From Macrostomum lignano (lineage: Eukaryota), in NCBI GenBank assembly GCA_002269645.1, contig NIVC01000337.1, positions 496,001-560,000 of the forward strand: 64,000 nt of DNA, in the 5' to 3' direction. The notes beneath the pieces were generated by a model. That model saw only the letters and a program-made list of their open reading frames with translations, searched no databases and was not told the origin of the DNA. A program made the translations under genes and the position numbers. This document shows positions 5,976 through 63,019 of the stretch, one piece after another. Each line of letters begins with the position of its first letter. Within the stretch, counting starts at the first letter, position 1.

Positions 5976-6451
5976 TAATATATATATTTGTTTGTTTTTG
6001 ATATATAACTTTCTTATAGTTATATTATAATTTGTCTTCATAGCACAAAAATGAACTTTATTAGTAAAATTTACTACTTATTGGATTAGCAAAGACAAAC
6101 ATAATTGCTATTGGAATTTTTCATTGATTATAGACTATTTGTTATTATTAATATAAATGCTTTAAATAATTACTTATGCCTAATATATAGCCTATCTATA
6201 TATACTTCCTTTACTAATTTAGATATTCTATTAGTATAAATATTTTTAGAGATAATATAATGTCTAGGCTTATATAGGTCTATTTTTGCATTGCACCATA
6301 TATAACATGATTAGGCCTAGTTAAGAGCAAAGCAAAGTACTCATTACATGCATATACCTATAGCCATAGCATAGGCCTTATAAATATAATAATAGATGCA
6401 TAGGCCCTACCCTATACTAAATTATAGCAAATGTTGACTAGTCTTTATATT

Positions 6452-14422: not shown

Positions 14423-17400
14423 TCAAGTGCTAGTGCCGCTTTTTACTGCCAACTTCCGGGCCGAGTGGTCGTACATCTTAATCAAATTCACGAATACCTG
14501 GTCCAGCGACATCTGGTAGAGAGCCCAGTAGCTCACCCCCATACGGCTCTGGTTGGCTGCCAACCATTTCAGTGCGGGTGACAGGCTCCGCACCGCGGGC
14601 TTGGGTACCGAAAACCGCATGACAAAACCCAGGCCGAGGTCCTCCTGTGTATGCGCTCCTTTGAACTGCTCTACAACTGCGTTCTTGATGGATAGCCTCT
14701 TCTGTCTGACTGCCGACTCGCCATCCGGAGCCAGCAGCAGCTCCAAGGTGTACGCGTCTCCGTGACTGCAAGGAAAGTACAAAAGTTATATAAGGATAAA
14801 AATACCGTTACGTATAATAGGCTGGAGTTGATCTCTGTTGACAGTACTGGTAGCTACGAAGAATAAAAATGACCAGGATGTGAACAGTGCATCAACATGC
14901 ACGCCTGACAGTCATTATGAGTCATGCTACTTATAGATATGGCATGCTGTGGTGTGGCGACTGCTGGTTAAATTCAATGTAGGAGGAATCTACTCGAAGA
15001 ACTGTAACCTTCTCTTGACTAAAAGCTCAGGGCTAACCAAATTTCTGGGGCCTACTGGTTAAGTACGCTCGTAGTTCTTTGGTAGCGGGTTAAGGTCTGG
15101 CGCTAAGGTTCCTGAGATCGATTCTGTGCCTGGTCTTAATCTGCGGCGCCTCTTGGCCTTAGATTTTTAGAGCGATTCTTACCCATTAGGACCGACCCCA
15201 GGGCACAGACTGCGTACATGCTTGAAGACAACGGAATCAAGACCACTGTACACCCTGCGTGAGCGCGTGCCTACGTACGAAATCTAATAATGCGTGTGCA
15301 AGCTCAGGCGTCGCATTTGGGGCGAAGTACGTATCCGTCGCTTTTATTTGCGACAAGACAATGCCTCTTGGAGTGCTTGCTCTCAACAGATTGTTTTTCT
15401 CAGGTTCAAATTTGACTTAATAAGCATTTGGATTCAATTTGAACGATGGGCAGCACCTGGTGATTTTTAGTTATTTGGCTATAAAGACTAAATTAGGGTT
15501 TGGGTTTTTACATGGTGTCCTCAGAAGAGCGTACTGTCATATGGGATGCTATGATGCAGCGAGGCTGCATTGGCTGTCAAAGTTGACTGAAATAGCTCAT
15601 ATTCAGTTTTGCCTGACCTGCCTGAATACACACTGCTCACGAGCTGGAGACAATGCAGACTGCTCAATAAAGTCCAATTCGCACTGCCATCAAGTCAAAC
15701 GACCGATGTAAAAAGGAACGAAAGTTGAAGTACAAGTAATTTGGTTTAATTTGATGGCACTGTGAACGAGCCATAATTCACAACACAAAAATATTTCATG
15801 CTGCTAATTAATAGACTCACCGACTCTGCAGCTGCTGCACGGTGCCCACTGAAATCATGCGGCCTTTGTTCATGATGCCGACCCGACTGCACAGGGCTTC
15901 GACCTCCTCCATACTGTGGGTCGTAACTATGACCGACCTCTGCTGATGCACCATGCGGCGGATGGCACCCCAGATGAAGCGCTTGTTCTCGGGATCAACG
16001 CCGGTCGAAGCCTCGTCAATAACGATAAGTGCCGGGTTGCCGAGCATGGCGATGGCGAGGCAGAGACGCCGCTTGTTGCCGCCCGAAAGCTGACCGGCTT
16101 GCTTGTCGCAGTGCTGCGCCAGGCCCAGGCTCTGCATCAGACAGATCGTCTGTCGCTCCGCTTCGATCGTATCAAGTCCGCGGATGGCCGCGTAAAAGCG
16201 AATGTGCTCGGCGACGGTGATGCTGTTGAAAAGTGGATTGTGCTGAGGGCAGTAGCCGATGGTGCCGACTGTGGCTCCCTCCCGACCGGAAATCCAGGCA
16301 CCGTCATGCACGCGGACCTCACAAACGCCCTCCGTCGCAGCCTCCTCGCCGACAATGACCGACATGGAGGTGGACTTACCGGCTCCGTTGGCGCCCAGCA
16401 GACCGAAGATCTCGCCGGCCATCGTTCCGAAGGTGATGCCTCGCACAGCGTGGACTCCGTTTGCGTGAATCTTTTGTAGCTTCCGTACTTCCAGCACGTT
16501 CTTGGAGTTCCTGGGAGCCGCCAGCACCCTCTCCGTCTCTTTGCGAGCGCCTTCTTCCATGTCGCTTTCGGGTTTGTTAGGCATGGTCTGGGAGCCGCCG
16601 TGGCAAAGAATCTCTTTGACAACTTCTTTTTTCTCAACGAAGAAAATAATGCCGCTCAGAATGATAATGTGCACTGGCATTGCTATCAAACAGTTGAGTA
16701 TCTCCTGTTGCTTCCACAGACTTTCAGCCATACCAGGCAGTTCGGAACCGTCAACTGTTTGATAATACTCAGCCTTGAAGAAATAGTACAACATGCAGTG
16801 AAACACAAGGCCAGTAGGGGCTGCAGGCGGAACTGTCCAAATCAGCACGTTAAAAATATAAGCGGGGAAGTAAGTTAGTAATGTGAAGGCTGCAGGCAAT
16901 AACACTCCGACCAACACGCAAACCGTTGAGACAAGGGTGTTGTGAGTCTTTATAAGAACAGCGATGGCGTACATTGTCAGCAGGTTGGACACAAGTCCAA
17001 AGAAAAACAATGGTAGAAGTGCAGCAAGAATAAGATACGCGCGCCTGTATGCCTCTGTAACCATTAACAGCCCGATGGCTAATGCGTAGAAAATCGCATA
17101 CTGGACCCAGTGCATCAAAAATGTGTTGATCCAATAGGCTAGATGCGTCATGCCAGTGGACAAGAGGTAGCCGCGCACCCTGCTGCATATGTCCTCAACT
17201 GGATCGCTCAAATATGAGATTGGGAGCAATGGGATCACTAATAAAAACACTATTAACGGCCAGCCGGTTCTGGCAAGTCTCGTCTCCCTACTATTTATTA
17301 CAGCGAGAGCCGTAGTGTTTTCGTGTTCTGCCATTCCAAAAAAATTCAGCATTGCGACTAGCGCTCTTCTGTGAATATGCACTTTGGATTTGGAGATATC

Positions 17401-20400
17401 TTTTCCAAAGAAAACACCAATGCTTACGGACCGGCCCTTGTTTGACACATTCTTTTGCCAGGAAGAGGCGTAGTACAAAACGCACGGAGTATACCATTTT
17501 TTATTATCATCTATATATCTATAGTTCCATAGCATATAGTACACATGATCATGAAAAAATTTATCAGACATAAGTTCCTCTATCCCCAAAAATGGAGGCT
17601 TTTCTATAACAATGGGCGGAAGAGGCTCGTCTTTTCTAGTTGCATCTCGAAGAGCAAGCCTCTTGCAGTCATCCACTGAGATGTAATTCGCGGCCCCATC
17701 AGAGATGCACACAATTGGTATTGCCTGTATACCAAAGTCTTCCACTCTAAACAACATCGGCTTGACCAGAATATCCATCTGCATCAATTCGAGCTTGCTT
17801 TCTTCAACTTTTTTAAACCCGGTTTTAGACGTAGCGGTGCTAACAGCCATCAGTGTGAGCAAGGCGGCCGGAACCAGGAACCTGCTTGCTAGATTAGCCT
17901 TTACCCGCACTTGTCGCTTGATATTGATCTTGAACAGAGCGGAAACTGACCTGTAACGAAGGTTCTCATTTTGGTTGAGCTTGTCATCAGTTGATCAGAT
18001 GCTTCCTTCACCTCGGGAGTCTCAACCGGAACACTAAGGATTTCGGTACGCTGAGGGAGCAGCAGCGTTCCTGCGCGAAAGGCTTTGATGATATCTTCCG
18101 AGTCCATCCCACCAAGCCTCATGAACACGTCGTCAAGAGATGCCTGCGATAAGCCAAACGTTTCTACCTCTCCGCTCGTCTCCAGAATTTGAACTGCTTC
18201 TGTCAACACAGCCGAGTCCATAGCAGGAACCTCAAGCTGGAGCTCCGTATCGATGTGACTCTTCACTCGGATCTGTTTCAGCTTGGTCAGTAGTGGCTGC
18301 ACTCCAGTCTTGGACTTCAGTGACACGTTCAGTGTAAAGCTGCAGCCAAACGCTTGCTTTAAAAACATCGAAGACCCCGCGCACACGATCTTGCCGCCGC
18401 ACAAAAAGATTTTGCGGTCTGCAAGAATGTCCGCCTCATCCATGAATTGAGTGCACAGAATAATGGAGCGGCAGCTCTTCTCCTCCTGTAGCAGCTGCCA
18501 CAGCTGTCGCCTCGACACCGGATCCAGACCGCTGGTGGGTTCGTCAAGAAACACAACATCCGGGTCGCCCAACAGAGCCAAGATCGTGCTCACCTTCCTC
18601 TTTTGCCCGCCACTCAGGTCGCACGAACGCACATTCTCCTTGTCTTCCAAGCCGAGTCTCTGGAGCATACTCCGAGCTTTCTCCAGCTCGCTTTTACTGG
18701 CCAATCTGCTGAGCATAGTGACTCGGATGCAGTCCATTACGGTGAGCGCGTCGCAAAGGTCGTCGAACTGAGGGCAGATACTAATCCGTCCTCTAAGCGA
18801 TAGACGGAGCAGCGGGTTCGTCACTAGACAGCCGCCGATATAGGCCGTTCCCTCGTCTGGCAGCTCATCGCCTGTGAGGATCTTGACGAGGGTTGACTTG
18901 CCTGCGCCGTTGTGTCCGATGAGAGCCGTGATCTGGCCTCGGTAAATCTTGCCTGCAGTTGTTGAAAGGAGATGAATGATTGTCGAGTTCCATTATTAAT
19001 TTCTTACTAGCATCACAATAGCACTCTAGATAGGCCAGCAAATAAATGCTCGAACAAGCGCCGATCGAAGAATTTATTGCACCATTACACTTCCCCTGAG
19101 CAGAAAAAAACATTTTGATCTCTGCCTTTCCGGCCGTCTTTCCCCCCCTATAATGATATGCTGAGCAATGGTTTTCTGATGCTCTTCTACTTTTCGGCGC
19201 CTTGCGTTTTCTCTCCCTCTATTTACTTTTTTGTACATCGTAGGTACGGCTTCATTGCTAAAAACGCCCAGATCTTCTAAATCCCTAGACCTCTTTTTTC
19301 CTCACATGTTTGAACGGAATTTTTCAGGAATAAAATATCTGTACTAGTATTGTTTTACTTTAGTATGTTGATAGTAACCTTCATTCAATCAATTTTATAC
19401 AAAAAATGAAAACTAATGTCAATTCACACCATGTAAAAAGTTGTCTTATTGTCGTTTAATCGAATCTAAATATACTAAATCTCTAAGGTTTGTATGCTTG
19501 TATTTACTAATTGTGAAGCAAGGCGTTTGCATTCACGTTAATTAACTTACACGATAGCTTCTTCAGCACGGCGGGCACGTCAGAGCAGCAAAAGCACAAA
19601 CTTCTGTAGGTCTTTGTGATGTCATTGACAACGATAATTGGTGACAGCCCCATCACCGGTTCGATGTGGGGCTCTGCCTTCTCCGCCGTAACTTGACCCG
19701 CACCCTGAGCAGTATCGTTCTCATCCTTCTTGCCTCGCTGGCTCCAGAAGGCGGGCATGAACGGGTATTGCGGCGGCAGACAAAGACCGTTTCCGCTGCT
19801 CAGGATGAAGTCCAGGTAAGTCAGCAGCAAGAATAGCAGCAGTAGCCCGATAGCCGTCCAGTTTTGGATTTGAGAAAGCCGCCCGGAGTTGTCGTCTTCT
19901 TGCTTAATTTCGGAGAATTGACGTCTGACTTCCGAACTGAGCAGCTTGGTGATGTATTCAGTGGCGAACAGTGGGGAGAAAATGTACAATAGGAATTTAT
20001 ACTTCTCTTGGGGTGGTGGCTTGATGAACTCTGTCACCAGCAAGCCGATGCTTATGACAGTAGCCAGTATTGACAAACCAATCGTTGACGGCATCAGCAG
20101 CTCCAGAAGCAGCAAGACGGCAGCAAAGTTGAGGCAAAACAATGTCAAGAAGACGAAGAGTCGAGCCATGGCTGAAGCTGGAAAAACACCGGGGCACTGC
20201 AGTGCGTTCGATGCCGTGAACACACCGGCGAACAGGAGGCACTCAACCAGAGTGATGAGCCAAATAACCAGCCAGTAAACGGACACCGACAGGCCGCTCC
20301 GAAACAGTCGCTGCAGGAAGCCACCGATCTTTAGCGCCCGGACGCAGGTTATGGTAGAGATGAGCATATAGAAGGTCACTCCACCTGCTGCTAAACTGAC

Positions 20401-21207
20401 TGTGAATCGCACAGTTGCGTGTATCAAACGTATAAAATAATTCTTTTTAATGTACTTTGCACAAATTGACTGCGGCAATGATATTGACGCCGCAATATTC
20501 CGTTTTTTAATATTGTTGCGCTCAGTTGGTTTACGAGTAGGTTTCAGAGAAGGGTCTTTGTAAAACACTTCGAACTGTTGCACATCAGCAAATCTGTCGA
20601 GTCCAAGCCTTTTCTGCGTTGAAAGTATCAACACTTTGTACAAAAATGCGCATCTGATGTCCCGGAATAACGTAGAGGTGGGCATAAAAATTTTACCTAA
20701 GCATTCCAACACCGTCCTAGATTTTTCGGGAGTTTTGGAGTAGCGTATCAGCGCTACGATGGCTGGATTGGTCCGATGGATATTAAACCGCTCTCTGCAG
20801 TCCGTCTCTGGCCCGCAGTCCTCAATCCAGTCGGCATTTCCACCTGCCGCAGTCATGAGGCTGGTTGCGGCAGCCGCCTCAGCCGGGAAGGCTGACCGGT
20901 CAACTAGAACTTTGGATTTCGACGCCGCAAAGTCGGAGGCGGTGTATAGGATGACTGTTTTGTTAGCATTTATTTCATCCAATGAAGAACTGACGTCCCC
21001 TTTAAGGGAAACAGCCGCTATTGGCAGGACATAAAGGTTGGACATCATTAGTGCGATGGGCACAACAATCACGAGGAGGCGCCAAGCCTTGAGCTTCAGC
21101 AGCAGCAGGAGCAGCAGTACGAACTGCTCGAAGAACCCGCCGGCGCTCAGGTTCTGCTCCGGCTTGGGCACGGCTGACGGCTGCTTCTTGCTTGGGTCGA
21201 GCGGCAT
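14423..21207 (-). CDS. ABCA: ABCA-subfamily full ABC transporter (TMD-NBD-TMD-NBD, about 1700 aa). Exons 21207-19551, 18952-15821 (contains a frame break near 17994-17901) and 14765-14423
   Basis: NBD1: GHNGAGKST, LSGGQKRK, VVFLDEPTSGLD. NBD2: GANGAGKST, LSGGNKRRL, TTHSMEEVEALC. Multi-pass hydrophobic segments and a C-terminal SLDQVF motif. Junctions tcgt|gtaagt...ctgcag|gc and cg|gtgagt...ttgcag|t are phase-consistent. Confidence 0.9.
15080..15370 (+). mobile_element. Diverged tRNA-derived SINE related to the 24.8 kb and 62 kb family
   Basis: Degenerate A- and B-box-like motifs (tggtagcgggtt ... gagatcgattct). The core ccactgtacaccctgcgtgagcgcgtgcctacgtacg resembles ccgctgtacactcctgtgtgagtgtgtgcctgcgtacg in the other SINEs. 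Lies in the last ABCA intron. Confidence 0.45.
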
Positions 21208-21994
21208 TCGGAAGTTTCTTCAGAGTGGCCACAAAGCCGCCTTTGTTGCAGGGAAGCCTGGCTGCCGTTCTCAGATTGCTATAGCTAGGAATGGTCTCAA
21301 GTTCTCTTCCTATACTGACCGCCTTTAGGCTGATTTGCCCAGCTCTCGGACTTAGCACACCGAGATCAGGAGTGCCGGAATTTCGGCAAGCACTAAGCAT
21401 CTCAGTTTGGTCTATGGTGCGTTCAGCTATTGTTATTTTTAGTAGCTCATGCACTTAGCTGATGAAGAGTGAAGACTGAGCAACCGGTTCGAATCAACCT
21501 ATTTTGGACACTCGTCCAGAAGCCCCACATGTAGAATACAGTCTCCCAACCGGTACCAAAAGTTGGTGGTAGCAGCGGAAAGCAAATACAAATTGAAACA
21601 AAAATCGATCCTTCACTACTGACTCAAAACATAAATTGTAACAAATAAATGAAAAGAGTATTTTCTTCAATAGCTGTGTTATTGGCATATTTATGAGCGT
21701 AGATTTATTTCAATCAGATCTGGTCAAGCATTTGTATTTTAAAGATGTATTGAGTAGAAGGCAGTTGTAAAATAAAATAGGAGCGTAACTTTGCCATCAT
21801 TTAAACCGGTCTTCGAGCTTACTAATCTTTACAAAGGTGCACGCCAACATACAGAGAGAGAGAGAGAGCATTGAATTTTGGAAACTAAAAGAGATAATTA
21901 CAAGCTCAAATAATAATGAAAAAAGATACGATTAGCCTGCCTGCAGGGAATTGCATGGTGTGTAAGAGAACAGCAATGCTGAGATTTTCTTGTT

Positions 21995-22350
21995 CCAATT
22001 CCTTATCTGCTCAGCCACCTCACTCCGAATCCTTATCTGTGCAGCCACCCCACTCCGAATCCTTATCTGTGCAGCCACCCCACTCCAATTCCTTATCTGC
22101 TGTGCAGCCACCCCACTCCAATTCCTCCTCTGTGCAGCCACCCCACTCCAATTCCTTATCTGCTGTGCAGCCACCCCACTCCAATTCCTCCTCTGTGCAG
22201 CCACCCCACTCCGATTCCTTATCTGCGCAGCCACCCCACTCCGAATCCTTATCTGTGCAGCCACCCCACTCCGAATCCTTATTTGTGCAGCCACCCCACT
22301 CCGAATCCTTATCTGCGCAGCCACCCCACTCCGATTCCTTATCTGTGCAG
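21995..22350. repeat. 30/33-bp minisatellite (cagccaccccactccgaatccttatctgtg)
   Basis: About 11 copies, giving repetitive ORFs in several frames. Confidence 0.95.
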
Positions 22351-22485
22351 CCAGCCCCATCTATACCAACTACATGCACAACACCAGCAAGGCTACAATT
22401 ATTTTAACTGACCAGTTGTTTTCATGTAAATCCTAACTCAAACTGTAAATTCCCGCCAGTCAACAAGGTGGAAAGCACGATCAGG

Positions 22486-25400
22486 TCACGGCACCGGGGG
22501 CAGGTGCTCCCGCACCGCCTGCAGAATCCGCGCCCTCGGCCCCTTCGGCAGGCCGATGCCACGCAGGCCCCGATCGTCCAGGCACACCAGCTCGCGCACG
22601 CCGATGTTGTGCTGCTCAAAGTGCGGAATGTACTGCCCATAGCCCAGGTAGTCGAGGAACTGTCGCAGGAACGGCGGCTCCGATCCGAAGAACCTGCATT
22701 GAACGATGAGTACGAACTTCATTATTGTATAAATATCACTTCTAAATCTACCATACCATCCCACCTGTAAGCTTCAAACCATCTACTTTCCCACACCTGT
22801 TTTCCCGTACATTTATTTCTCTCACATCCGTTCCCCTCACGTCCCGTTCCCCTCACACCTGTTCTCCTCACACCTGTTCCCCTCACACCTGTTCCCCTCA
22901 CACCTGTTCCCCTCACACCTGTTCCCCTCACACCTGTTCCCCTCACACCTGTTCCCCTCACACCTGTTCCCCTCACACCTGTTCCCCTCACACCGGTTCC
23001 CCTCAGCAGACAATACAAAAAGATAAAACTTCAGCAGACCAGGAGAGCTTCTTGTGCCGCAAAGGGTTCGTCATGTAGCCAAGTATTCCCGGACGGTCTG
23101 GCGGCCAGTCTCGTTGCCATGGCAACCCAGTCCCGATGCCATTGCCGATCGGTCTGAGAAAGTCCGCTTCGTCCCCATCAGCAGACGGCTCGTCCAGGTG
23201 GCCGCTGCCGGCCTGTTGAAGCGACTGCAGGCCGTCCAGCTGCACTTGTTGCGGGTCACTCGAGGACATCAGGCTGAGAGCCTGGTTCAGGCGCTGGCTC
23301 AGGTGGGTCACGTGCCGCTCCAGGCGTCGGACACGATGCTCGAGCGCTCTAGTTGAAATGAATGAATTGGTTTTTTAACTCGTAATTCAAATCTGCTGAC
23401 TTGCCAGACTTATTGATGAACAAAGCTTTCTGCAGCTTCTATGGTATTTTCTATTGTAGCTTGGAATTTAGAGAGAGATAATTATGAAAGATAGTGATGA
23501 GAGGTAATGATAAGATAGATAATGATGAGAGAGATAATGATGAGATAGATAATAATGAGAGAGATAATGATGAGATAGATAATGATGAGATAGATAATAA
23601 TGAGAGAGATAATGATGAGATAGATAATAATGAGAGAGATAATGATAAGATAGATAGTGATGAGAGATAATGATGAGAGAGATAATGATGAGAGAGATAA
23701 TGATGAGAGAGATAATGACGAGAGAGATAATGATGAAAGAGATAATGATGAGAGAGATAATGATGAGAGAGATAATGATGAGAGAGATAATGATGAGAGA
23801 GATAATGATGAGAGAGATAATGATGAGAGAGATAATGATGAGAGAGATAATGATGAGAGAGATAATGATGAGAGAGATAATGATGAGACCACGGCGCACC
23901 ATGCGCATAGTGAAAGTCCGGCATCTATGAAATTGAGGCCTCAATGACAACTTCAATAATTTTGTGAGGTGTTGTGCCATCACCATGTCCACCATTTCCC
24001 TTCTAGCCTGAGTACAAAGCGGCTTCTCCAACCCCCTGGGGCACCTGACGGCCGCCCCGCTGCTGCCAGACGAGGAGCCCGAGAAAGTGTCGGCCTCGTC
24101 ATCGAGACTGTCCGAGCGGGCGGAGGCCGAGCTGCCGTCAGTCGAGCGGCGCCTTCGCCGTCCGCCTCTCCGCCGACTTTTCGAGCCGCCGGACCGTCGC
24201 CGGTCGGACTCGCCTCGCCGATGTCGCCGTTTCGACGACCTGCCGTCCGGCCGGGCGGCGGCTGCGGCGGTGGAGGCGGCGGACTTCCGGCCGAACTGCG
24301 GCGGCGGCGGGGGTGGCGGCGCGGGCGGCGGATGCTTCGGCGGAGGCGGTCGCGGCGGCGGCTGCGGTCGCTCAGGCGGCGCCACCTTCGGGCTGGCGAC
24401 CTCGGAGCTGCCCGGCCGGCTGAAGTCGAGCTCCGCCAACGGTTCCTCCTCGCCTTCGTCGTTGCTGACGCTGGCCAGCCTGGCGTTGTTGGCGGCGGCA
24501 ACCGCGGCAACAGCGGACGCAACGGCATCCCGGTTCATCGCGACCGGCTGGTCGGGCTCGAAGGCTGCGTTGGCCCGGCCGCTGGCGGGGGACTTGGGCT
24601 GATAGCTGGATGGCGGGAGAGACTTGGGCTGATAGCTGGATGGCGGGGGACTTGGGCTGATAGCTGGATGGCGGGGCTGATAGCTGGATGGCGGGAGAGA
24701 CTTGGGCTGATAGCTGGATGGCGGGGGACTTATGCTGATAGCTGGATGGCGGGGCTGATGGCTGGATGGTGGGAGAGACTTGGGCTGATAGCTGGATGGT
24801 GGGGCTGATTTTTTTTATTTATTAGAGGCAGGGGGGTTGTGTGCACCCTGGCGCACTTTAAGCGACACAGGCACACAACCGGCGAGAGGCATTACTGCCC
24901 ATTCCGCCGACTCCCCTGAGCAGGCATACAAGCGCGCGGATACGTTACGCAGGCACACACTCACACAGGAGTGTACAGCGGCCCTAACTTTATCAATTGT
25001 TAGGCATGTACACTTCACTGCGCCTTGGGGGGTTGGCTCTCAAGGCCGTTAATTGCACGAGCAGAGCCAAGCCGAGATTCCAATTCAGCCCCAAATTAAT
25101 GTGACTGCACTTGGAATCGAGCCTGGGTCGCTGGCACACCAGAGCAGCTGCGCTACCGCTGGGCTACGGCCCCCCTTATGGTGGGGCTGATGGCTGGATG
25201 GTGGGGCTGATAGCTGGATGGTGGGGCTGATAGCTGGATGGTGGGGCTGATAGCTGGATGGTGGGGCTGATAGCTGGATGGTGGGGCTGATAGCTGGATG
25301 GTGGGGCTGATAGCTGGATGGTGGGGCTGATAGCTGGATGGTGGGGCTGATAGCTGGATGGTGGGGCTGATGGCTGGATGGTGGGGCTGATAGCTGGATG

Positions 25401-28400
25401 GCGGGGCTGATGGTTGAAAAATCTACTTGGAATTAAGGAGAAAATGGAATTAAAGAGGCCACTTACGCATCCGAGGGTCCCTCCTCCGGCTGCTGGTGTC
25501 CCATCTCGTCTTTGTGCGGCTTCAGCGGCGCCGGCGTCTCAAAGCCGGGAGGCGGCGGCGGGGTCTTCGGCTTTTCCGACTGCGAGCGGGGAAAATCAGC
25601 ATTTTTCTACTAAGAGTAGTGAAACAAAATACGGAAATCAATTTTTTGCTAATAGCAAACTAATCAAGTGCTATTCACCTGTTCGGGCTTCACCCTCAGT
25701 GGCGGAACGGCATGCTTGGCCAGGCCTTCCAGTTTTCCATTAGTCACCTGCAGGCAGGTGAATGTACGCTTGCAAACTTAATTCAACTGTTTTTAACAGA
25801 TTCAGAGGCTTAGCTAGTAGATAAAATTTAATTTAACTTAATTTTAATAGAAAAGAACAAATGAAAATGCTACTGCAAACAACAACCACTCAGGTAAAAT
25901 GAACAACAGGTAGCTTTCTGTATGAAGCAATAAACTGCAGCTGCTGTTAGGAGCAGCAACTAGTTCAAATGTATTTGCTCACTAAATTATACCGCAATAC
26001 GTGTACGACACAGTGGGGCAAGCAAACGGATGCACAAATCAAGCGCAGAAAGAAGAGGCAATGGGAAAAGCATTCAATTTAGCAGGCAAAGCTATATGAA
26101 AAATGATTCTGCATATTAATTGCACTACGAGACGCAATGCAGAAGTAAAAATCAGTCAAAAGCAGAGAAAACAGTTATGAAATTCAGTGCTGATCGGTGC
26201 ACTTCAGAGCTCAAGTCATCCTAATTTGGGCAGCGACGGCAGCTCAGTCGACCTCCTCGACGGTGGGTCCGCCCGCTCGTCCCGCTCGCTGCGGACCCTG
26301 CGGAGGCGGCTGCTGCTGCTGATGCAGCTTGGCCATGAGAGGCGAGCACAGGCTGCTCAGCTGCCGCTGCTGTTCGGCGATCTCGTCCTTGTCGGCCGTC
26401 TGGTTGTTCTCCAGCCAGGAGATGACGCGGTCGCAAGCGGCGGTCACCTCGCCGGCCTCCTTCTCGCCCAGCCGGTCCTTGCAGTCGTTGGCCGCCTGCT
26501 TGTACTGGAAGGCGAGCGATTCCAGCTGGTTGCGGGCCGCCAGGCGCTCGCGGTGCCGCTCGTCCTCCTCGCGGAACTTCTCCGCGTCCCGCACCATCCG
26601 CTCGATCTCGTCCTTCGACAGGCGACCCTTGTCGTTCGTGATTGTGATCTTCTCCTCCTTGCTGGTGCTCTTGTCCTTCGCCGACACCACCAGGATTCCG
26701 TTGGCGTCTACGTCGAAGGTCACCTCGATCTGCGGGACTCCGCGCGGCGCTGGCGGGATGCCGTCCAGGTTGAACCGGCCCAGCAGGTGGTTGTCCCTGG
26801 TCAGCGCCCGCTCGCCCTCAAACACCTGCACCGTGACGCCGCTCTGGTTGTCCGAGTACGTGGTGAACGTCTGCGTCGCCTTGGTCGGGATGCGGCTGTT
26901 CCTCTCCACGATCTTGGTCATCACGCCGCCGGCAGTCTCGATGCCCAGCGACAGCGGAGCCACGTCAAGCAGCAGCAGGTCTTCGATCTTCTCGTCCTTC
27001 ACACCGGTCAGCACCGCCGCCTGCACCGCGGCTCCGTACGCGACCGCCTCGTCCGGGTTGATCGACTTGTTCAGCGTCCGGCCGCCCATGAACTCCTGCA
27101 GCAGCTTCTGCACCTTCGGGATCCTCGTCGATCCGCCGACCAGCACAATCTCGCTGATGCTGCTCTTGTCCATCTTGGCGTCCCTCAGCGCTCGCTCCAC
27201 CGGCTCCATCGTCTGACGGAAGAGGTCAGCGCACAGCTCCTCGAACCGAGCCCTGGTCACGCTGGTGTAAAAGTCGATGCCCTCGAACAGCGAGTCGATC
27301 TCGATGCTCGCCTGCGCTGAGCTGCTCAGAGTTCGCTTCGCTCGCTCAGCCGCTGTGCGCAGCCGCCTCACTGCTCGGGCGTTGCCGCTCATGTCCTTGC
27401 GGTACTTGCGCTTGAACTCCTGGATCAGGTGCTCCACCAGCCGGTTGTCAAAGTCTTCGCCGCCCAAATGAGTGTCACCGGCCGTCGATCGCACCTCGAA
27501 CATGCTGCCCTCCGACACCGTCAGGATGGACACGTCGAATGTGCCGCCTCCCAGGTCGAAGATCAGAATGTTCTTCTCGCCGTCCAGGCTCTTGTCCAGC
27601 CCGTAGGCCAGGGCAGCCGCCGTCGGCTCGTTCACAATCCGCAGCACATTCAGCCCGGCGATCGCACCAGCGTCCTTCGTCGCCTGCCGCTGGCTGTCGT
27701 TGAAGTAGGCCGGCACCGTGATCACCGCGTCAGTCACCTTCTCGCCGAGGTACGCCTCCGCCGTCTCCTTCATCTTGGTCAGCACCATGGCCGAGATCTC
27801 CTCCGGGTAGAAGCTCCGCCTCTCGCCCATGTACTGAACCTCAATCTTCGGCCGCCCACCGTCGTTCGCCACCTTGAACGGCCACAGCTTCATGTCCCGC
27901 TGCACCGTCTCGTCGCTGAACTTCCTCCCGATGAGTCGCTTGGCGTCGAACACCGTGTTCTCCGGGTTCATCGCCACCTGGTTCTTTGCCGCGTCGCCCA
28001 CCAGCCTCTCCGTGTCCGTGAAGGCCACGTAGCTGGGCGTGGTTCGGTTGCCCTGGTCATTGGCGATGATCTCCACTTTGCCTGCCTGGAACACGCCCAC
28101 GCACGAGTACGTGGTGCCCAGGTCGATGCCGATTGCAGGTCCGTTGCTCCTCTTGCCCATGATGCTTCTTCACTGAGCTGAGCTTGACTGAGAAAGAGGC
28201 TTCTTCACTGAGGAAGGCTTGTCTTGCTTTGGATGCTTCTGGATTGCTTTGGTTGCGATCCGAACTGCTTGCTCCTGGGCCAGCAGGACCGCCTGCTTAT
28301 ATAGATTGCAGCTCAGCTTCGAGAAATTTCCAGAATTCCCCATTCACGCCGTCACACATTGGCCCTCTGCTTCGCTGTGCTATTTTTAGAATAGCCTTTC

Positions 28401-31400
28401 TGGAAAATTCTAGAATTAATTAAGAAATGAAATGTGTATAACTCCTGCGTTCAGCTACTAATAGTAGAAATATGAACACAAGGCGTTCCGAAAATGCATA
28501 TTTAAAGGATAAAATTTTCAATTCACTAATTTTCTTTGTTGAAATCCCCTACCGTCCGTGAAGCGCCGCGGAGATCATCCTCCGTGACGGTGACAGACGA
28601 TTCCGCAGGCGCTTTGGGGGCCTGCTGTCGAACATCAGAGGTCGAAGTGCGCGCCTGGGGCTTGGCTGACTGCTGCAAATGAGAGAGATGGCACCATTGA
28701 TTATGTAAAGACACGGGGACTCACGGTGCTTAAATTATTGTTTCCGGTGCAAGATCTTTTTAGACTTACAACAGTGATGAGACGAACTTGACTAGTTTTG
28801 CTTGCCGGCGAAATATTCACTGAAAATGAAAGCAACTTACTGCCCAAATTAACTTTGCAACGTGAAATGTGAAAGTCTCGTCCCATCCCGCCTCTCTCCC
28901 ATCCCGCACCTCTCCCATCCCGCCTCTCTCCTATCCCGCCCCTCCCATCCCGCATCTCTCCCGCCTCTCTCCCATCCCGCCCCTTCTCTTATCCCGCCTC
29001 TCTCCCATCCCGCCCCTTCTCTTATCCCGCCTCTCTCCCATCCCGCCCCTTCTCTTATCCCGCCTCTCTCCCATCCCGCCCCTTCTCTTATCCCGCCTCT
29101 CTCCCATCCCGCCCCTTCTCTTATCCCGCCTCTCTCCCATCCCGCCCCTTCTCTTATCCCGCCTCTCTCCCATCCCGCCTCTCTCCCATCCCGCCTCTCT
29201 CCCATCCCGCCTCTCTCCCATCCCGCCTCTCTCCCATCCCGCCTCTTTCCCATCCCGCCTCTCTCCCATCCCGCCTCTCTCCCATCCCCGCCCCTCTCCC
29301 ATCCCGCCTCTCTCCCATCCCGCCCCTCTCCCATCCTGCCTCTCTCCCATCCCGCCTCTCTCCCATCCCGCCCCTCTCCCATCCCGCCCCTCTCCCATCC
29401 CGCCTCTCTCCCATCCCGCCTCTCTCCCATCCCGCCTCTCTCCCATCCCGCCTCTCTCCCATCCCGCCCCTCTCCCATCCCGCATCTCTCCCATCCCGCA
29501 TCTCTCCCATCCCGCATCTCTCCCATCCCGCATCTCTCCTGCCTCTCTCCCATCCCGCCCCTCTCCCATCCCGCCCCTCTCCCATCCCGCCTCTCTCCCA
29601 TCCCGCATCTCTCCCATCCCGCATCTCTCCCATCCCGCATCTCTCCCATCCCGCCCCTCTCCCATCCCGCATCTCTCCCATCCCGCCTCTCTCCCATCCC
29701 GCCTCTCTCCCATCCCGCCTCTCTCCCATCCCGCCTCTCTCCCATCCCGCCTCTTTAACTAACGTCCCTAGCCTCCCCACCGCGGATCAAATACAAAGAA
29801 TCCTCGTACCGCCATCCTCCAGTCGCTGCTGGCTGTAGACGGGGTCAATTCGGGTCAGCGGTCCAGAAGAGGCCGACTTTCCAGGCGCCAGCGGCTGCTT
29901 GGTGATTGGCAGCCGCTGCTGCTCCTGCTGTTGCTTTTGCTGCTGCTTCTGCTGCTGCTGTCTCTGATGCTGCTGCTTGGTCTGCTGAACGGTTGACCTC
30001 GATTGAACCCGAGCCTGCAGCAGACAGGTGGCTTGAGTGAATTGTGACTCTGGTGCCAGCTTACATATTTAGTTTCCGAGCCCCCAGCATCCCCCGCTTA
30101 CGGCCGCGGCGGCGGCGGCGGCGGCTCTGGCGTCGCAGAAGCTTCGGACCCAGCGGACCAGGTTGAGGGTCTGATAGAGCGAGCCCGACATGATCTCTGC
30201 CGATGGGATGTTTTTATTGTGGGGGCGGTAATTTAATAAATAAAAATATTGATAACAATAAATGACTCAAAAACTACCCATATTTTGCTGCCTAAATTGT
30301 CACCATCGTGTTTAGCATTGTTTGAAAAATTAAATTTGTTAGTGAACTTTTCGTATTGTTGAGCTAAATTTCATTTTTAATTTGTGAAGACGGATGTCAC
30401 TGGGGTTGTGAAGCCGGATGTGACTGGTGGTTTTGAAGCCGGATGTGACTGGTGGTTTTGAAGCCGGATGTGATTGGGGGTTGTGGAGCCGGATGTGACT
30501 GGATTTGTGAAGCCGGATATGATTGGGGGTTGTGAAGCCGAATGTGATTGGGGGTTGTGAAGCCGGATGTGATTGGGGGTTATGAAGCCGGATGTGATTG
30601 GGGGTTGTGAAGCCGGATGTGATTGGGGGTTGTGAAGCCGGATGTGACTGGTGGTTTTGAAGCCGGATGTGATTGGGGGTTGTGAAGCCGGATGTGATTG
30701 GGGGTTATGAAGCCGGATGTGATTGGGGGTTGTGAAGCCGGATGTGATTGGGGGTTTTGAAGCCGGATGTGATTGGGGGTTATGAAGCCGGATATGATTG
30801 GGTTTGTGAAGCCGGATGTGATTGGGTTTGTGAAGCCGGATGTGATTGGGTTTATGAAGCCGGATGTGATTGGGCTCATGAAGCCGGATGTGGTTAAGGT
30901 TGTGAAGCCGGATGTGACTGGGGACAGTGAAGTGGCTCCATGAAAAGCATCGTGCAAACCGCCGTCTCACCTGACGCACTGCTGCTGGGCTGAGTGGCGC
31001 CCATTCGGCACAGGTGAGTCACGCACAGGTCCAGGTTCGCTAGTCGAGCAGCTCGAGTCCCCGGCGACCGATTGAGACCATCGATTGGCTGATCGACTGG
31101 GGGATGAAGGAGGCAGAGCAGCTCAGAGGTTAACGCATCTGACCCTCTCGCACCAGAGATTTTGGGACTCCTGCATCAAAAGCTTGTTGCACGACTCCCT
31201 TCGATGAGCGACAACCCGATGAGGGCGCAATCGTGCTCAGTGGTCAGCGGAATGGGAATTCCTGCTTGCCTCTTCGCTAGCTGCAGGTGACTAGCTAACT
31301 GGTAATATACGAACCATGTGCCTAAGGACTAATTCAACAACTGACAAGCCATGCATTGGCATGCATTGAGTTTAAACCAGAGCGTCACTTACGCCGCTTC

Positions 31401-31984
31401 TCAACAACCAGAGGCAGCGACAGGCCGTCAGCCACAGCGGACTGCAGGCTGATCGACTGAGGCCGGCGCGACTGGCCAGCCGAGCTGGAGGAGCCCAGCT
31501 GCGACAGGCTGGAGTTGAGCCAGGCCAGGTGACCCTGCGGTGGTGCACAGGCGGCAACGGTTAACTGCGCTGGTTAGAGTCAAAGGGCTGGTGCAGATTT
31601 TTTACCAGCAAATCGACAATATCAATCGAAAACTGAACAGGTTTGGAAGCAGAGAGTTGCTTTAGTTTTACCACAGCCAAAATACATTAAACGATGGAGA
31701 ACAACTGAAACTGGTTGCTTGTCGGTCTCTGGTAGAATTTTTTACCATTTTTCTTGAGACACTTGCGAGTAACTCTTTAACAAAAACACGTGCTGGCTTA
31801 ATTTGCAGTTCAAACGTCCAGGTGAGACGTCTACGGACTACGGATGTCTTCATCCGTCTACGGACGTCTCACCTGGGGGGGGCCTCACCTGGATCTCCGT
31901 AGAAGCGTTGCCAGACGAACCGGCCGGGCCCGACCTCAAAGGGTTGCGCCGGGCGTCCCACTGCGCAGCTGCCAGCCCGGTCAT
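22486..31984 (-). CDS. 11-exon, 666-aa protein: N-terminal calponin-homology (CH) domain, Gln/Pro/Arg-rich low-complexity middle, coiled coil, C-terminal SAM domain. Exons 31984-31889, 31534-31393, 31096-30971, 30196-30102, 30014-29810, 28819-28770, 28672-28553, 25579-25467, 24581-24045, 23348-23040, 22693-22486
   Basis: All 10 introns are GT-AG with matching phases (0,1,1,0,1,0,0,2,2,2), summing to 2001 nt with no internal stop. CH-like segment: [13 protein letters not shown]...[18 protein letters not shown]...[16 protein letters not shown]...[18 protein letters not shown] segment: [53 protein letters not shown]. Confidence 0.82.
22830..23005. repeat. 15-bp minisatellite (cctgttcccctcaca) in intron 10 of the CH-SAM gene
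   Basis: About 11 direct copies. Confidence 0.95.
23490..23887. repeat. 15-bp minisatellite (gagagataatgatga), with longer variants, in intron 9
   Basis: Direct periodicity; source of the HHYLS, IIISL and NDERD spurious ORFs. Confidence 0.95.
24585..25413. repeat. 20/28-bp minisatellite (ggtggggctgatagctggat and a longer variant) in intron 8, interrupted by a SINE
   Basis: Arrays at about 24585-24810 and 25178-25413. Confidence 0.9.
24810..25175 (-). mobile_element. tRNA-derived SINE, about 365 bp, copy 1
   Basis: On the minus strand: 5' GGGGGGCCGTAGCCCAGCGG (A box), GGCTCGATTCC (B-box-like) and an A-rich tail. Flanked by atggtggggctgat, a putative TSD that is ambiguous because it lies inside a tandem array. 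Highly similar to 61935-62295. Confidence 0.85.
26244..28160 (-). CDS. HSP70: Cytosolic, heat-inducible-type Hsp70, intronless, 638 aa
   Basis: Signatures [23 protein letters not shown] and [12 protein letters not shown]; cytosolic C-terminus GPTVEEVD. Confidence 0.99.
28297..28415 (-). promoter_or_regulatory. Hsp70 promoter: TATA box and two perfect 4-unit heat-shock elements
   Basis: TATATAA on the minus strand at 28297-28303. TTCgaGAAatTTCcaGAA at 28318-28335 and TTCtgGAAaaTTCtaGAA at 28398-28415 are alternating nGAAn pentamers. Confidence 0.9.
28875..29755. repeat. 16-bp minisatellite (gcctctctcccatccc) with a 33-bp higher-order block, in intron 5
   Basis: About 55 copies; G-rich on the host gene's sense strand. 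Confidence 0.95.
30385..30920. repeat. 24/25-bp minisatellite (gaagccggatgtgattgggggttgt) in intron 3
   Basis: About 21 copies. Confidence 0.95.
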
Positions 31985-33279
31985 TGGCAGCTGCAGACCT
32001 CAGGGCTCGGGGCCGACTGACAGGCCGCAGGTAATAAATAATATTTGACGGACTCCCCAGGCTGCAAAGGCGCTCGGTGTGGGGGTGATTATAATATTTT
32101 AAACATAACTGACAGGAGAATGAAGACACAGACAGATGCGCAGAGCACACAGCTGCAGGGTCAGTGAGTTGACAGAGCAGCGGGTCAGAGCTAGGAACAG
32201 CTGCAATAAGACTTCGGTTCTCAGCGAGCGGCAGCGCAGGACAGACTATGCTTGTGTGTGTTTAACGGCTAAGCCAAGGCCAACTCGGGGACCTCCCGCT
32301 GAGAATATCGCGCTCCAGATGTGAGAGAGAAAACTGTTTGAGAACAAGAGAAATAAAGACGCTGCCTCTTTGCTTCTGCGAGCGTGACCAAGTTTCTGCG
32401 CACCAATATTCCCTTAATACTGCCTCCACCTGCTCCCGGCCCAGTAGGGGGGGGGCGACTTTGTCCAATCATCGCCACTGAGGATGAGGCATTAAAGTCG
32501 CATAACGTGTGCATTTGTGGATTAGGCTGCAATAAAATATTGGCGGAAAAGTATTACCAAAAGCAACAGGTGTGGCAATTGTCCATTGTCAACTCTCCAA
32601 TCAATGTCTGCCCTGGGCACAGGGCCCAAACTGATGGTAACCAAAACCGTACGGTGACTCCAGATCAGATCCATGGCATCACTCGCACTGGCAACTGACT
32701 GAGTGACTGCAGCGGCTGACAAGCCACTGTAAGCTGGGGACCTCTCCCCATACAGCTCTCCAACAATTGTTGAAGTTTGCCTTGAAGGCTTTGAGTTGCG
32801 GTATTCATTGAAAGCTAGCCGTATAGAGAGGAAATTCAGCTTCAAAAATCCCATAGTGACAGCAGCTCAATTGCCAGGCGCAGCCACCTCCAGCAACACG
32901 CACTTAATTTTCTTTCACGCCACTCTCTCAGCGTCTGGCCATCAATAATAGAGGAAGAATGGGATCCCCATATCAAACAGGGAAATTTAACTAGCCCCAT
33001 CTACGAGTACTGCATAGCCTGAGTAATGGAAATAACCGCGCCAGAGGCATTCTCCTCTTCCCTGCCATAGTAGACCAACGGTATAACAACACAGCATTGC
33101 AGAAAGTCCAACTTGATTCAACTCTAGAATACACGTACTGTTTACATCTCACACAGAACTCAACCATTCAATTACGTGTATGAGCCTGATTTGACGATCC
33201 ACTCTTTGGAATTCGAAAAACAATTGTTCCCACACAATTTCATAGTTCTTGCGATAGCTCCTTGCGATTCTGTGAGGTC

Positions 33280-33445
33280 ATTGTGATTCAGCCCGGTCGT
33301 GAGGTCCTTGTGATTCTGTCCGGTCGTGAGGTCCTTGAGATTCTGTGAGGTTATTGTGATTCTGTGAGGTCATGAGGTCCATGTGATTCTGTTCGGTCAT
33401 GATGTTCATGTGATTTTGTCCGGTCATGAGATCCTTGCGATTCTA
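33280..33445. repeat. Degenerate tandem repeat of about 19 bp (tgtgaggtccttgtgattc-like)
   Basis: Several imperfect copies visible. Confidence 0.6.
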
Positions 33446-34265
33446 TTCAATCGTGTACTCGTAATTCTAAGAGGTTCTGCCTTGATGGGGATGTCTGAGC
33501 GTTGCTAGTCAACTGGTCTAACAAGTTATCCATTGCAGTCAGTTTGATCAGGGCATTAGGATGGCATCTATCCTCTTATGTCGATGGCTAATCCCATTAG
33601 TTCTACATGTATTGCAGATGATTATAGCCTGCCAGGCTTCTCAGTCAAGTGAATTCTACTCGTGCGTATTGCTAACGCTTTCAACCTACAAAGCAAACAG
33701 CTCACATGCTCACACTTAGCGGCTGTAAACCACCTGGCTGCAGCGGAAGAAAAGCAGGCCAAACTCTTTTGTTCGGAATGCCAGACAATAACTGACAAGT
33801 GTCAACCCCATTCTGTCACGGGCCGTGCAAATTTTCACAGAGGCCAAGCATCACCCTGCAACTGTTACAAGTCGTTAAACAAGCATGCGCTCTCCCAGTG
33901 CAGGTCCTCACTTTTCCCTAACTAAAGAATGGCTCAAATCTCTTTCACTGATGCACTTTAAGTCGCAATAGCAGTAGCAAGAGGTTGTGCAGAAAAATAT
34001 CAGTTAGAATAGACATTTGCTAACTACACTACTGACTGGCAGTAGCAAAAATTAATGTCGCAAGCGTCTCGGTAAACATTATTAAACAAATTAGGATATA
34101 AAATGACGAAGACAAAAACGCGGCCATAAATCTTTTTCAATTTTGGTTATTTTTTTCCAATCAAGTTCAGCTATGGATACTCGCGTGTATTTTCTGCATC
34201 GCGCATTCACAGTTCAGTCTAGCATCAGCCTCAAGCCAGCGCCATCCTCAGCTCTGAGGGCGGAT

Positions 34266-34724
34266 CTACTTCTTCTTGGACACACCGACGGTGCGGCCGC
34301 GGCGGCCGGTGGTCTTGGTGTGCTGGCCGCGCACTCGCAGGGTCCAGTAGTGGCGCAGGCCGCGGTGGGCGCGCACCCGCTTCAGCCGCTCGAGATCCTC
34401 GCGCAGCTTCGTGTCCAGCTGGTTGCTGATGACGTGCCGGTGCTTCATGTCCTTGATGTCCTTCTGCCTGTTCAGAACCCAGTGCGGGATCTTGAACTGC
34501 TGCGGGTTCATGATGATGGTCACCATCTGCTCAATCTCGTCGTCGGACAGCTGGCCGGCCCGACGGTCGCGGCCGATCCCCGCCCGCTTGGCAACCAGGT
34601 CCGAGTAGCGCCTGCCGACACCCTTGATGGAAGTCATGGCTGTGCGGGCCATGACCTTGCCGTCAATGTTGGTGTTGGAGATGCGGATGATGTGCTTGAA
34701 GTTGGCCGGGATGATCAGCGACAT
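34266..34724 (-). CDS. RPS18: 40S ribosomal protein S18 (uS13), intronless and divergent
   Basis: 152-aa ORF with [22 protein letters not shown] and the conserved C-terminus [31 protein letters not shown] pyrimidine (5'TOP-like) motif lies at 34762-34756. Confidence 0.97.
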
Positions 34725-34830
34725 TTTGATGCTGGGCGCTGAAGATGCCGTTTATGGAAGAGTATTAAAATTTAAAACTAAAATTCGCTACTCGACTACT
34801 TAAATCCTAACAAAAGCAGTAGACTACATA

Positions 34831-61934: not shown

Positions 61935-62295
61935 TTTTTTTAATTAGAGGCAGGGGGGTTGCGTGCACTCTGGCGCACTTTAAGCGACATTGGCACACAA
62001 CCGGCGAGAGGCATTACTGCCCATTCCGCCGACTCCCCTGAGCAGGCATACAAGCGCGCGGATACGTACGCAGGCACACACTCACACAGGAGTGTACAGC
62101 GGCCCTAACTTTATATTCTCGTTAGGCATGTACACTTCACTGCGCCTTGGGGGGTTGGCTCTCAAGGCCGTTAATTGCACGAGCAGAGCCAAGCCGAGAT
62201 TCCAATTCAGCCCCATATTAATGTGACTGCACTTGGAATCGAGCCTGGGTCGCTGGCACACCAGAGCAGCTGCGCTACCGCTGGGCTGCGGCCCC
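61935..62295 (-). mobile_element. tRNA-derived SINE, copy 2 of the 24.8 kb family
   Basis: Near-identical to 24810-25175. TSD cccaagcctccta at 61922-61934 and 62296-62308. Confidence 0.88.
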
Positions 62296-63019
62296 CCCAA
62301 GCCTCCTAGATCTAAAAAAAAAAAATAATAACTAATTCAACACAACTAATGGTTGCTTAGTCCACATAATTCACGGCTGATTAATCTGTTTAAAGAGTAT
62401 CATTTCAATACAGTTTATTAACTAACAAAATCAATGCACAGCACCATACAGAAATCAAGGACAACAGGTGCAACAGTTGCTACCAGTGGTCCTTGACCCA
62501 AATACTCGTATAAGAAATTTCAATCAACAGGTATCTATGCGATAAGGCTCTAACTACAGGCTAGGGTGGATAAATATTTTATACTCAATTATGCTAAGGC
62601 TACATAAGATTTCTTATATAAGCAACTAAAATTCTATAAAACCTGCCTTGGCTAACCAAAATGGTTTATAGACTAAAATATCAGTACACCTTGATTGTCA
62701 ATTATAAACGGACTACGAGAAAACAAAATTTCACAATGAAAGGAAAGAATGCTTCAATGCATATTTCCAATCACTGAATAACAATTTGACATGCAATCAA
62801 AATGGTCTGTTTTGGAATCTGAAACTAGATATCATAACAAAATTATGTTGCCATGGGGATTTACAGAGCAGCTCAAGGACGAATCCTAGAAAGGATCTCA
62901 GATTCGAAGCGAGAGAATCTACACTCGCAGATTCCCAGACGGCAGTGAGCTGCGAAATCCGCTATGCTAGACGTGAAAGGAACTCGAAATCCTCTCATTC
63001 ATCATCTGATCCTCTCAGG

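Follow-up and report, generated by a model that had tools for sequence, protein, structure and literature searches.

In the flatworm Macrostomum lignano, an intronless Hsp70 gene of predicted heat-inducible type probably lies nested, in the same orientation, within an intron of a second gene, whose exons are predicted to encode a protein carrying an N-terminal CH domain and a C-terminal SAM domain (the CH-SAM or host gene). We analysed 64,000 nucleotides (nt) of contig NIVC01000337.1 (GenBank assembly GCA_002269645.1, Mlig_3_7; positions 496,001 to 560,000 of the forward strand), a stretch referred to here as the window, and positions are those of the window unless another sequence is named. 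Both genes read on the minus strand, and Hsp70 would occupy the seventh host intron. We put the probability of this nested arrangement at roughly 0.7.

The original prediction had described a 2973-bp intron bounded by ACG/gtaggg and tcgcag/TCG (slashes mark splice sites), in phase 0 on both sides, and such an interval was borne out at 28552..25580 of the minus strand. Its donor, ACG/GTAGGG, is cut at 28553/28552 and its acceptor, TCGCAG/TCG, at 25580/25579; the intron is in phase 0 because the upstream exons total 834 nt. All the parts said to lie inside it, namely two perfect heat-shock elements (HSEs), a TATA box, an intronless Hsp70 of 638 amino acids (aa) and its 3′ region, are present on the host strand, and the distance from the distal HSE to the host exon-7 donor, estimated there as about 140 bp, measured 137 bp. 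From the HSEs through the ATTAAA signals, the Hsp70 unit covers 28415..25827 and thus falls wholly within 28552..25580, on the same (minus) strand as the host. Intron 7 is the largest of the host introns and the only one above 300 bp that lacks a minisatellite.

The Hsp70 unit

The Hsp70 coding sequence forms one open reading frame (ORF), 28160..26244, uninterrupted by any intron. Residues 9-612 of its product match positions 1-597 of the 599 in the Pfam HSP70 profile (PF00012; E=3e-256), and the protein ends in GGPTVEEVD, thereby carrying the EEVD motif. A PTVEEVD-type ending is a mark of cytosolic Hsp70s. Exact look-up of the window protein in the protein collection returned no record; it is 98-99.7% identical to the Hsp70 portion of two M. 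lignano gene models, A0A1I8H2H4 and UPI0007A2D90C.

Upstream of this frame stands a compact promoter of 260 bp, in the order HSE, CCAAT, HSE, TATA (Table 1). In the 64-kb window, two occurrences of the four-unit HSE pattern, TTCNNGAANNTTCNNGAA, stand against an expected 0.02, and none of 100 shuffled sequences held two or more; three-unit matches in the window were all confined to the same two sites. The proximal HSE lies 15 nt and the distal HSE 95 nt 5′ of TATATAA. From the position of the TATA box we infer a transcription start some 25-30 nt 3′ of it, which would give a leader of about 110 nt. mRNA-like Hsp70 contigs with about 87% nucleotide identity are monocistronic; their untranslated leaders measure 47 and 100 nt, and a spliced leader is absent. 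No untranslated sequence was common to them and the window. Two ATTAAA signals follow 395 and 411 nt past the Hsp70 stop, and no AATAAA was found in the Hsp70 3′ region on the minus strand. Judged from these motifs, Hsp70 clearly has a promoter of its own, and the two ATTAAA signals are what points to a 3′ end of its own.

A full-length domain, an EEVD end, an intronless frame and HSE arrays by a TATA box agree with a cytosolic inducible (HSPA1-like) Hsp70. Drosophila hsp70 and human HSPA1A/B likewise combine an intronless ORF and an EEVD end with inverted nGAAn arrays just 5′ of the TATA box, and the human HSPA1A promoter contains a CCAAT box; the window gene resembles these classical heat-inducible genes in all of these traits. 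To our knowledge, Drosophila hsp70 and human HSPA1A/B are intergenic, often in tandem or in clusters, and do not sit within an intron of another gene. The best-supported reading of the unit is an autonomous gene of heat-inducible type, as predicted from its promoter. In M. lignano itself, strong induction of HSP genes and of retrotransposons with HSEs after 2 h at 37 C goes together with canonical HSEs 5′ of their transcription starts, and a reporter under the Hsp20 promoter responds to heat (bioRxiv 10.1101/2024.12.18.629116; PMC6371448). The Hsp20 promoter and the HSE-bearing long terminal repeat retrotransposons share with the window Hsp70 canonical HSEs 5′ of the start, in their case one to four, with strong induction at 33-37 C (PMC6371448; bioRxiv 10.1101/2024.12.18.629116). 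They differ in having been assayed by quantitative reverse-transcription PCR, RNA-seq and reporter transgenes, whereas the window Hsp70 is known from its sequence.

Flanking exons and the CH-SAM family

Host exons were assembled from GT-AG sites and reading frame. The resulting 11-exon model has GT-AG at each intron, compatible phases and an open frame of 666 aa, and its spliced coding sequence of 2001 nt holds neither stops nor frameshifts. Across the Hsp70-bearing intron, the length of exon 8 (113 nt) brings exons 7 and 9 back into one frame. Exons 5-7 recur, with identical splice sites, in the UniProt model A0A1I8H2H4, which derives from the older, independent ML2 assembly, and the junction between exons 10 and 11 (KKLSW/FFGSEPP) is identical in GenBank PAA85308.1 despite a weak GTCTGC donor. 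Alternative donors for exon 9 differ by at most 4 bits, and one at 23952 is marginally better. A candidate 27-nt microexon at 31170-31144 lowered both the match to the NAV2 CH domain (E from 6.7e-5 to 0.0064) and the family-profile score (from 46.5 to 38.4 bits) and was rejected; the count that makes the Hsp70-bearing intron the seventh was therefore right. A CTGCAG 6 nt 5′ of the predicted host ATG (31985-31995, minus strand) fits the trans-splice motif [T/C]TNCAG, and the host gene may itself be trans-spliced.

The designation of the host as a CH-SAM gene held at once for its SAM end, where Pfam SAM_1 matched the stop-free segment containing the SAM exon (2e-8). Its CH end was recovered through homologues and the NAV2 CH domain and not through Pfam: the CH profile (PF00307) gave no match at E<=10 to the host N-terminus or the translated frames. 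A Pfam scan for CH over the X-masked minus-strand frames of 30900-34800 likewise found ribosomal protein S18 only; the CH domain is divided among three short exons and has diverged too far for Pfam. When the host N-terminus was compared with solved structures by phmmer, the best match was the NAV2 CH domain (PDB 2yrn, E=6.7e-5), followed more weakly by alpha-actinin CH domains.

The exhaustive homologue search, for which the SAM exon alone served as query, led to a family of animal proteins of about 650-1300 aa whose C-terminal SAM domains are about 50% identical. In ten of the 20 representatives scanned, the N-terminus holds a CH domain that passes the Pfam threshold and SAM lies at the extreme C-terminus; named members come from a starfish, a sea urchin, a crinoid, amphioxus, a coral, a nemertean, an oyster and two sponges. 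Against the Patiria member XP_038072816, the host N-terminus (exons 1-4) matched with E=4e-11 and the C-terminus (exons 10-11) with E=7e-19, in colinear order and, for the C-terminus, with 34% identity across 163 aa. Against a profile of 11 family members, the N-terminus scored 46.5 bits and the C-terminus 83.3 of a total of 131, with the CH region aligned to profile positions 57-193. As the two halves match both ends of single proteins colinearly, the exons on either side of Hsp70 are read as one CH-SAM gene and are predicted to encode opposite ends of one conserved protein.

Like family members such as the Patiria protein, Branchiostoma 'protein sickie-like' (XP_066281179) and Magallana 'neuron navigator 3 isoform X4' (XP_034325839), the host product has a navigator-type N-terminal CH domain, a long middle part of low complexity, a coiled coil bearing an RLE(S/R)HV motif, the sequence KKL..FFG.EPP and SAM at the extreme C-terminus. 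In contrast to them, it is rather short (666 aa versus about 665-1300), its CH domain is too diverged for Pfam, and the family motifs SSESGRGTM and IRKQLEGLE.MYSE have no clear counterpart in it. The SAM-exon matches also include many arthropod proteins (from scorpions, spiders, the horseshoe crab and insects) that have no Pfam CH domain in the listed isoforms, and several of these are misleadingly named, for example 'serine-rich adhesin for platelets', 'hornerin' or 'neuron navigator 3'. As a whole, the animal CH-SAM family appears to be so far uncharacterised and without a proper name.

Table 1. Features of the probable nested locus and of its predicted host gene, in window positions
Feature	Position	Strand	Basis
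Host exon 1, ATG at 31984	31889..31984	-	predicted
Host exon 2, first part of CH domain	31393..31534	-	frame; NAV2 CH and family alignment
Host exon 3, CH domain middle	30971..31096	-	six-frame match to CH-SAM profile, E=0.002; NAV2 CH alignment
Host exon 4, last CH helix	30102..30196	-	frame; NAV2 CH and family profile
Host exon 5, Q-rich linker	29810..30014	-	identical to residues 1-68 of A0A1I8H2H4
Host exon 6	28770..28819	-	A0A1I8H2H4
Host exon 7	28553..28672	-	A0A1I8H2H4
Host intron 7, GTAGGG..TCGCAG, 2973 bp, phase 0 on both sides	25580..28552	-	splice sites and frame
Distal HSE, four perfect nGAAn/nTTCn units	28398..28415	-	pattern match
CCAAT box, between the two HSEs	28358..28362	-	sequence match only
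Proximal HSE, four perfect nGAAn/nTTCn units	28318..28335	-	pattern match
TATA box TATATAA, 137 nt 5′ of Hsp70 ATG	28297..28303	-	
Cryptic AG/G acceptor just 3′ of TATA box	28292..28293	-	used by UniProt model A0A1I8H2H4
Hsp70 coding sequence, intronless, cytosolic type, 638 aa and stop	26244..28160	-	ORF translation and Pfam
Candidate poly(A) signals, two ATTAAA (at 25848 and 25832)	25827..25848	-	sequence match
Host exon 8, 113 nt	25467..25579	-	predicted only
Host exon 9, proline-, arginine- and serine-rich	24045..24581	-	predicted; both boundaries uncertain
Host exon 10, coiled coil	23040..23348	-	homology and PAA85308.1
Host exon 11, SAM domain and stop	22486..22693	-	Pfam SAM_1 and PAA85308.1
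Minisatellite arrays	30382-30923, 28876-29754, 25178-25411, 24583-24804, 23471-23888, 22821-23005, 21994-22359		

One host gene or two, and possible effects on the host

GenBank annotation was inspected over window positions 12486-33269, to which the 20.8-kb GenBank stretch NIVC01000337.1:508486-529269 is 100% identical. Two genes are called there, a 145-aa ORF with the SAM domain and an ABC transporter, and neither the Hsp70 ORF nor CH-SAM exons 1-9 have a GenBank call in this interval. The coding sequence of the 145-aa product (PAA85308.1) begins within exon 10 at Met 23269, the first Met past the stop 5′ of exon 10 when the sequence is read unspliced, and the ORF looks like the product of a 5′-incomplete or intron-retaining transcript assembly. 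The annotation of this scaffold was built from RNA-seq transcript assemblies (PMC5730564); that Hsp70 was left out of it might fit a gene silent without stress. When a cleaned full-length host model was used as query, the sole database match was A0A1I8H2H4, with exons 5-7 as the common part, and searches with the host model found no M. lignano database protein that contains exons 8-9 or spans CH and SAM. A homologue search with exons 7-11 gave no match, probably because low-complexity words filled the candidate list.

The ML2 model A0A1I8H2H4 pairs the exon-7 donor with the AG at 28293, 3 bases past the TATA box, and reads on into Hsp70. In the window, the frame of exon 7 spliced to this AG ends at TGA 28172-28170, an in-frame stop that the model skips by means of a 6-nt 'intron'; further on, 11 residues are replaced by PAA. 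The model thus looks like a fusion artefact that wrongly joins host exons 5-7 and Hsp70, and it does show that the exon-7 donor can be paired with an acceptor within the Hsp70 unit. Fusion of Hsp70 to unrelated neighbour exons is found in all three older M. lignano models considered (A0A1I8H2H4, UPI0007A2D90C and A0A1I8IUW7), and the tiny pseudo-introns and odd substitutions in older models are probably artefacts of annotating an indel-rich assembly.

Several of these observations weigh against a single host gene that encloses a newly arrived Hsp70. The SAM end is a separate 145-aa gene in GenBank at all three paralogous loci, no database protein joining exon 7 to exon 8 was found in the host-model searches, and the evidence for exons 8 and 9 consists of frame and splice signals. 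The donors of exons 7, 9 and 10 are non-consensus; that of exon 7, ACG/GTAGGG, deviates from the GT[G/A]AG enriched at M. lignano donors (PMC8629364). To these are added the Pfam result for the CH domain and the fact that other genomic contexts of Hsp70 are seen in fused gene models, not in genomic DNA.

A rival reading is a locus of two genes, in which the ancestral CH-SAM gene has come apart or its parts are expressed separately, and Hsp70 is intergenic rather than intronic. The CH unit would then end at or after exon 7: unspliced read-through appends VGDFNKEN and a stop, and a splice into the Hsp70 leader runs into TGA 28172. For the downstream unit, the start would be provided by spliced-leader trans-splicing at 25580, or would lie within intron 9 as in GenBank, whose Mlig_3_7 annotation has only the 145-aa ORF from Met 23269 here and at both paralogous loci. 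Such an organization has precedent in the species: about 7% of assembled M. lignano transcripts are multi-gene precursors (PMC5730564), about 30% of the genes receive by trans-splicing a leader that ends in ATG, and operons are estimated to hold 15% (PMC8629364). An ATG supplied by the leader at 25579 would be in frame with exon 8, which begins in phase 0. The locus also resembles M. lignano spliced-leader operons (PMC8629364) in having close same-strand genes, with a gap of about 250 nt between poly(A) signal and acceptor that falls within the 1-kb operon criterion. In contrast to these operons, however, Hsp70 has its own TATA/HSE promoter, and the flanking exons are predicted to encode one conserved protein. 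The acceptor at 25580, TCGCAG, does not fit the trans-splice motif [T/C]TNCAG (PMC8629364), and exon 7 is not followed by a poly(A) signal, as neither AATAAA nor ATTAAA occurs between it and the Hsp70 promoter. Moreover, the frame is open over all 11 exons with compatible phases, both halves match the ends of one protein family in colinear order, and the 145-aa ORF can be explained by the 5′-incomplete or intron-retaining assembly noted above. We therefore regard a split into two genes as unlikely and retain the nested arrangement.

Within the nested arrangement, the position of Hsp70 looks young. In the ML2 model UPI0007A2D90C, an Hsp70 99.7% identical to that of the window is preceded by other upstream sequence and has an ankyrin/kinase-like gene fused downstream, and A0A1I8IUW7 carries yet another upstream part; the flanking extensions of these other Hsp70 models gave no match to the window. 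As far as such fused models, rather than DNA, allow, Hsp70 appears to be a dispersed, recently duplicated multi-copy gene of which the window copy is one. Near-identical Hsp70s with different flanks point therefore to a recent, probably incidental insertion, and the copy in intron 7 could have originated by DNA-level duplication of the dispersed gene. Around the Hsp70 unit, neither target-site duplications nor terminal repeats were detected beyond chance matches.

In a nested locus of this kind, heat-shock factor (HSF) would bind the HSEs under stress and give rise to a monocistronic Hsp70 mRNA ending about 420-440 nt past the stop, whereas full-length host mRNA would be made by transcription through the silent Hsp70 unit, followed by splicing of 28553 to 25579. 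Because the two genes share one orientation, host transcripts could be caught by the Hsp70 poly(A) signals or by the AG at 28293. Effects on the host could thus include promoter occlusion, use of the sense Hsp70 poly(A) site and capture of the exon-7 donor by AG 28293, and an active promoter 137-250 bp into the intron could hamper host elongation. We would expect any such effects to be a by-product of the insertion and not a designed switch.

A stronger version of this idea is a heat-triggered isoform switch, in which Hsp70 firing beside a weak donor diverts host transcripts to a CH-only product. The diversion could come about through polyadenylation within the intron, at the Hsp70 3′ end, or through pairing of the exon-7 donor with the AG past the TATA box, and heat-induced read-through past the weak ATTAAA signals could in addition reach the SAM exons. 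If true, stress would uncouple the CH and SAM ends of a conserved protein; we consider such a switch quite improbable. Slightly more doubtful still is that it has been selected as a device by which HSF-driven Hsp70 transcription blocks or truncates the host, leaving CH only, or expresses the SAM exons by read-through. The geometry would permit it, with the two genes oriented alike, the HSEs near the non-consensus donor GTAGGG, a sense poly(A) signal in the intron, weak ATTAAA signals about 250 nt 5′ of the host acceptor, and one database model (A0A1I8H2H4) that joins exon 7 to the Hsp70 leader. However, that model looks like an annotation artefact, given its 6-nt 'intron' over the TGA and its odd substitutions, and near-identical Hsp70s with other flanks suggest a recent position, not a conserved one; an insertion that seems so young speaks against a selected switch. 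There may also be little host output to act on, as the host is apparently weakly expressed, its 5′ half never having been annotated.

The SAM and ABC-transporter region exists in two further paralogous copies (L002 and L003), which are 98% identical. Followed in the upstream direction, the homology of both to the window breaks off within intron 9, at 23458; read in the direction of the host gene, it resumes in L002 110 bp before exon 10. The 9.4 kb upstream of this point in L002 (NIVC01000094.1, 434-9811), in the equivalent of intron 9, hold minus-strand ORFs of 1246 aa and 520 aa that look like a long interspersed nuclear element, together with what looks like a Tc1-like transposase fragment; the upstream exons, and any Hsp70, would lie farther out. 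That the host copy is instead a relic without function, as one among several homeologous copies of a hidden polyploid, with only Hsp70 and a short SAM transcript being expressed, is very improbable: it would fit the three paralogous copies, the unannotated host 5′ exons, the minisatellites in most introns and the transposons in the L002 intron, but the 2001 nt of spliced coding sequence contain no stops or frameshifts, the family-aligned CH and SAM residues are kept, and a model from an independent assembly has exons 5-7 in identical form.

Surroundings, known nested genes and significance

The minisatellites of the host region consist of 15-30-bp units in up to 55 copies and are found in introns 3, 5, 8, 9 and 10 and just past the stop, with none in the Hsp70-bearing intron; the array at 24583-24804 adjoins the predicted exon-9 acceptor. 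Host intron 8 (about 24997-25165) also contains an interspersed repeat with a tRNA-like 5′ end, GGCCGTAGCCCAGCGGTAGCGCAG...GGCTCGATTCCAAG, that recurs at 61935-62297. The two copies are 96% identical across 366 bp; ARAGORN called no tRNA on the repeat, which is probably a tRNA-derived short interspersed nuclear element. On the host strand, 2.3 kb 5′ of the host ATG, lies an intronless ORF for ribosomal protein S18 (34269-34724, minus strand; Pfam Ribosomal_S13, 1e-43), for whose exact sequence the protein collection held no record. Large exons of an ABC transporter (15820-21207, minus strand) lie directly 3′ of the CH-SAM gene; the called product has ABC_tran domains, and the exons are 98% conserved in the two paralogous loci. 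GC skew is strong at 1-6000 of the window (0.47-0.68) and at 50000-52000 (0.54), where it coincides with a long tandem array translating as PKDTPIPKTPRSQRHPD repeats.

The original prediction had started from the premise that nested genes are usually antisense, which is weak: in mouse and human, more than a tenth of genes take part in host/nested pairs, and same and opposite orientations are 'broadly similar', with only a slight bias to the opposite one (PMC11694760). About 6% of Drosophila genes are intronic (PMC3786989). In mammals, expression of nested genes has been linked to premature polyadenylation of the host (PMC11694760; PMC3192792). The pairs H13/Mcts2 and Herc3/Nap1l5 (PMC11694760; PMC3192792) resemble the M. 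lignano locus in that an independent unit lies wholly within a host intron, and among mammalian host/nested pairs the same-orientation type is common. In H13/Mcts2 and Herc3/Nap1l5, imprinting or tissue-specific expression serves as the trigger and a host effect has been measured, whereas here a stress trigger is putative. As nested same-strand genes, and host truncation linked to nested-gene expression, are already known in mammals, the locus would be a nested gene of an ordinary kind. Its novelty is local, namely an unannotated Hsp70 copy of inducible type, a full-length CH-SAM model and the exposure of a wrong UniProt fusion model.

For M. lignano as a model flatworm, the gain in annotation is a probably heat-inducible Hsp70 copy and a 666-aa CH-SAM gene that are missing from Mlig_3_7, and the 260-bp HSE-CCAAT-HSE-TATA promoter could become a second heat-inducible driver for transgenesis. 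The analysis also defines an uncharacterised animal family, with members in sponges through to amphioxus, that pairs a navigator-type CH domain at the N-terminus with SAM at the C-terminus. Transgenesis and heat-shock RNA-seq exist for M. lignano, and heat-dependent interference with the host, if true, would make this locus a clean, experimentally switchable case of interference by a nested gene.

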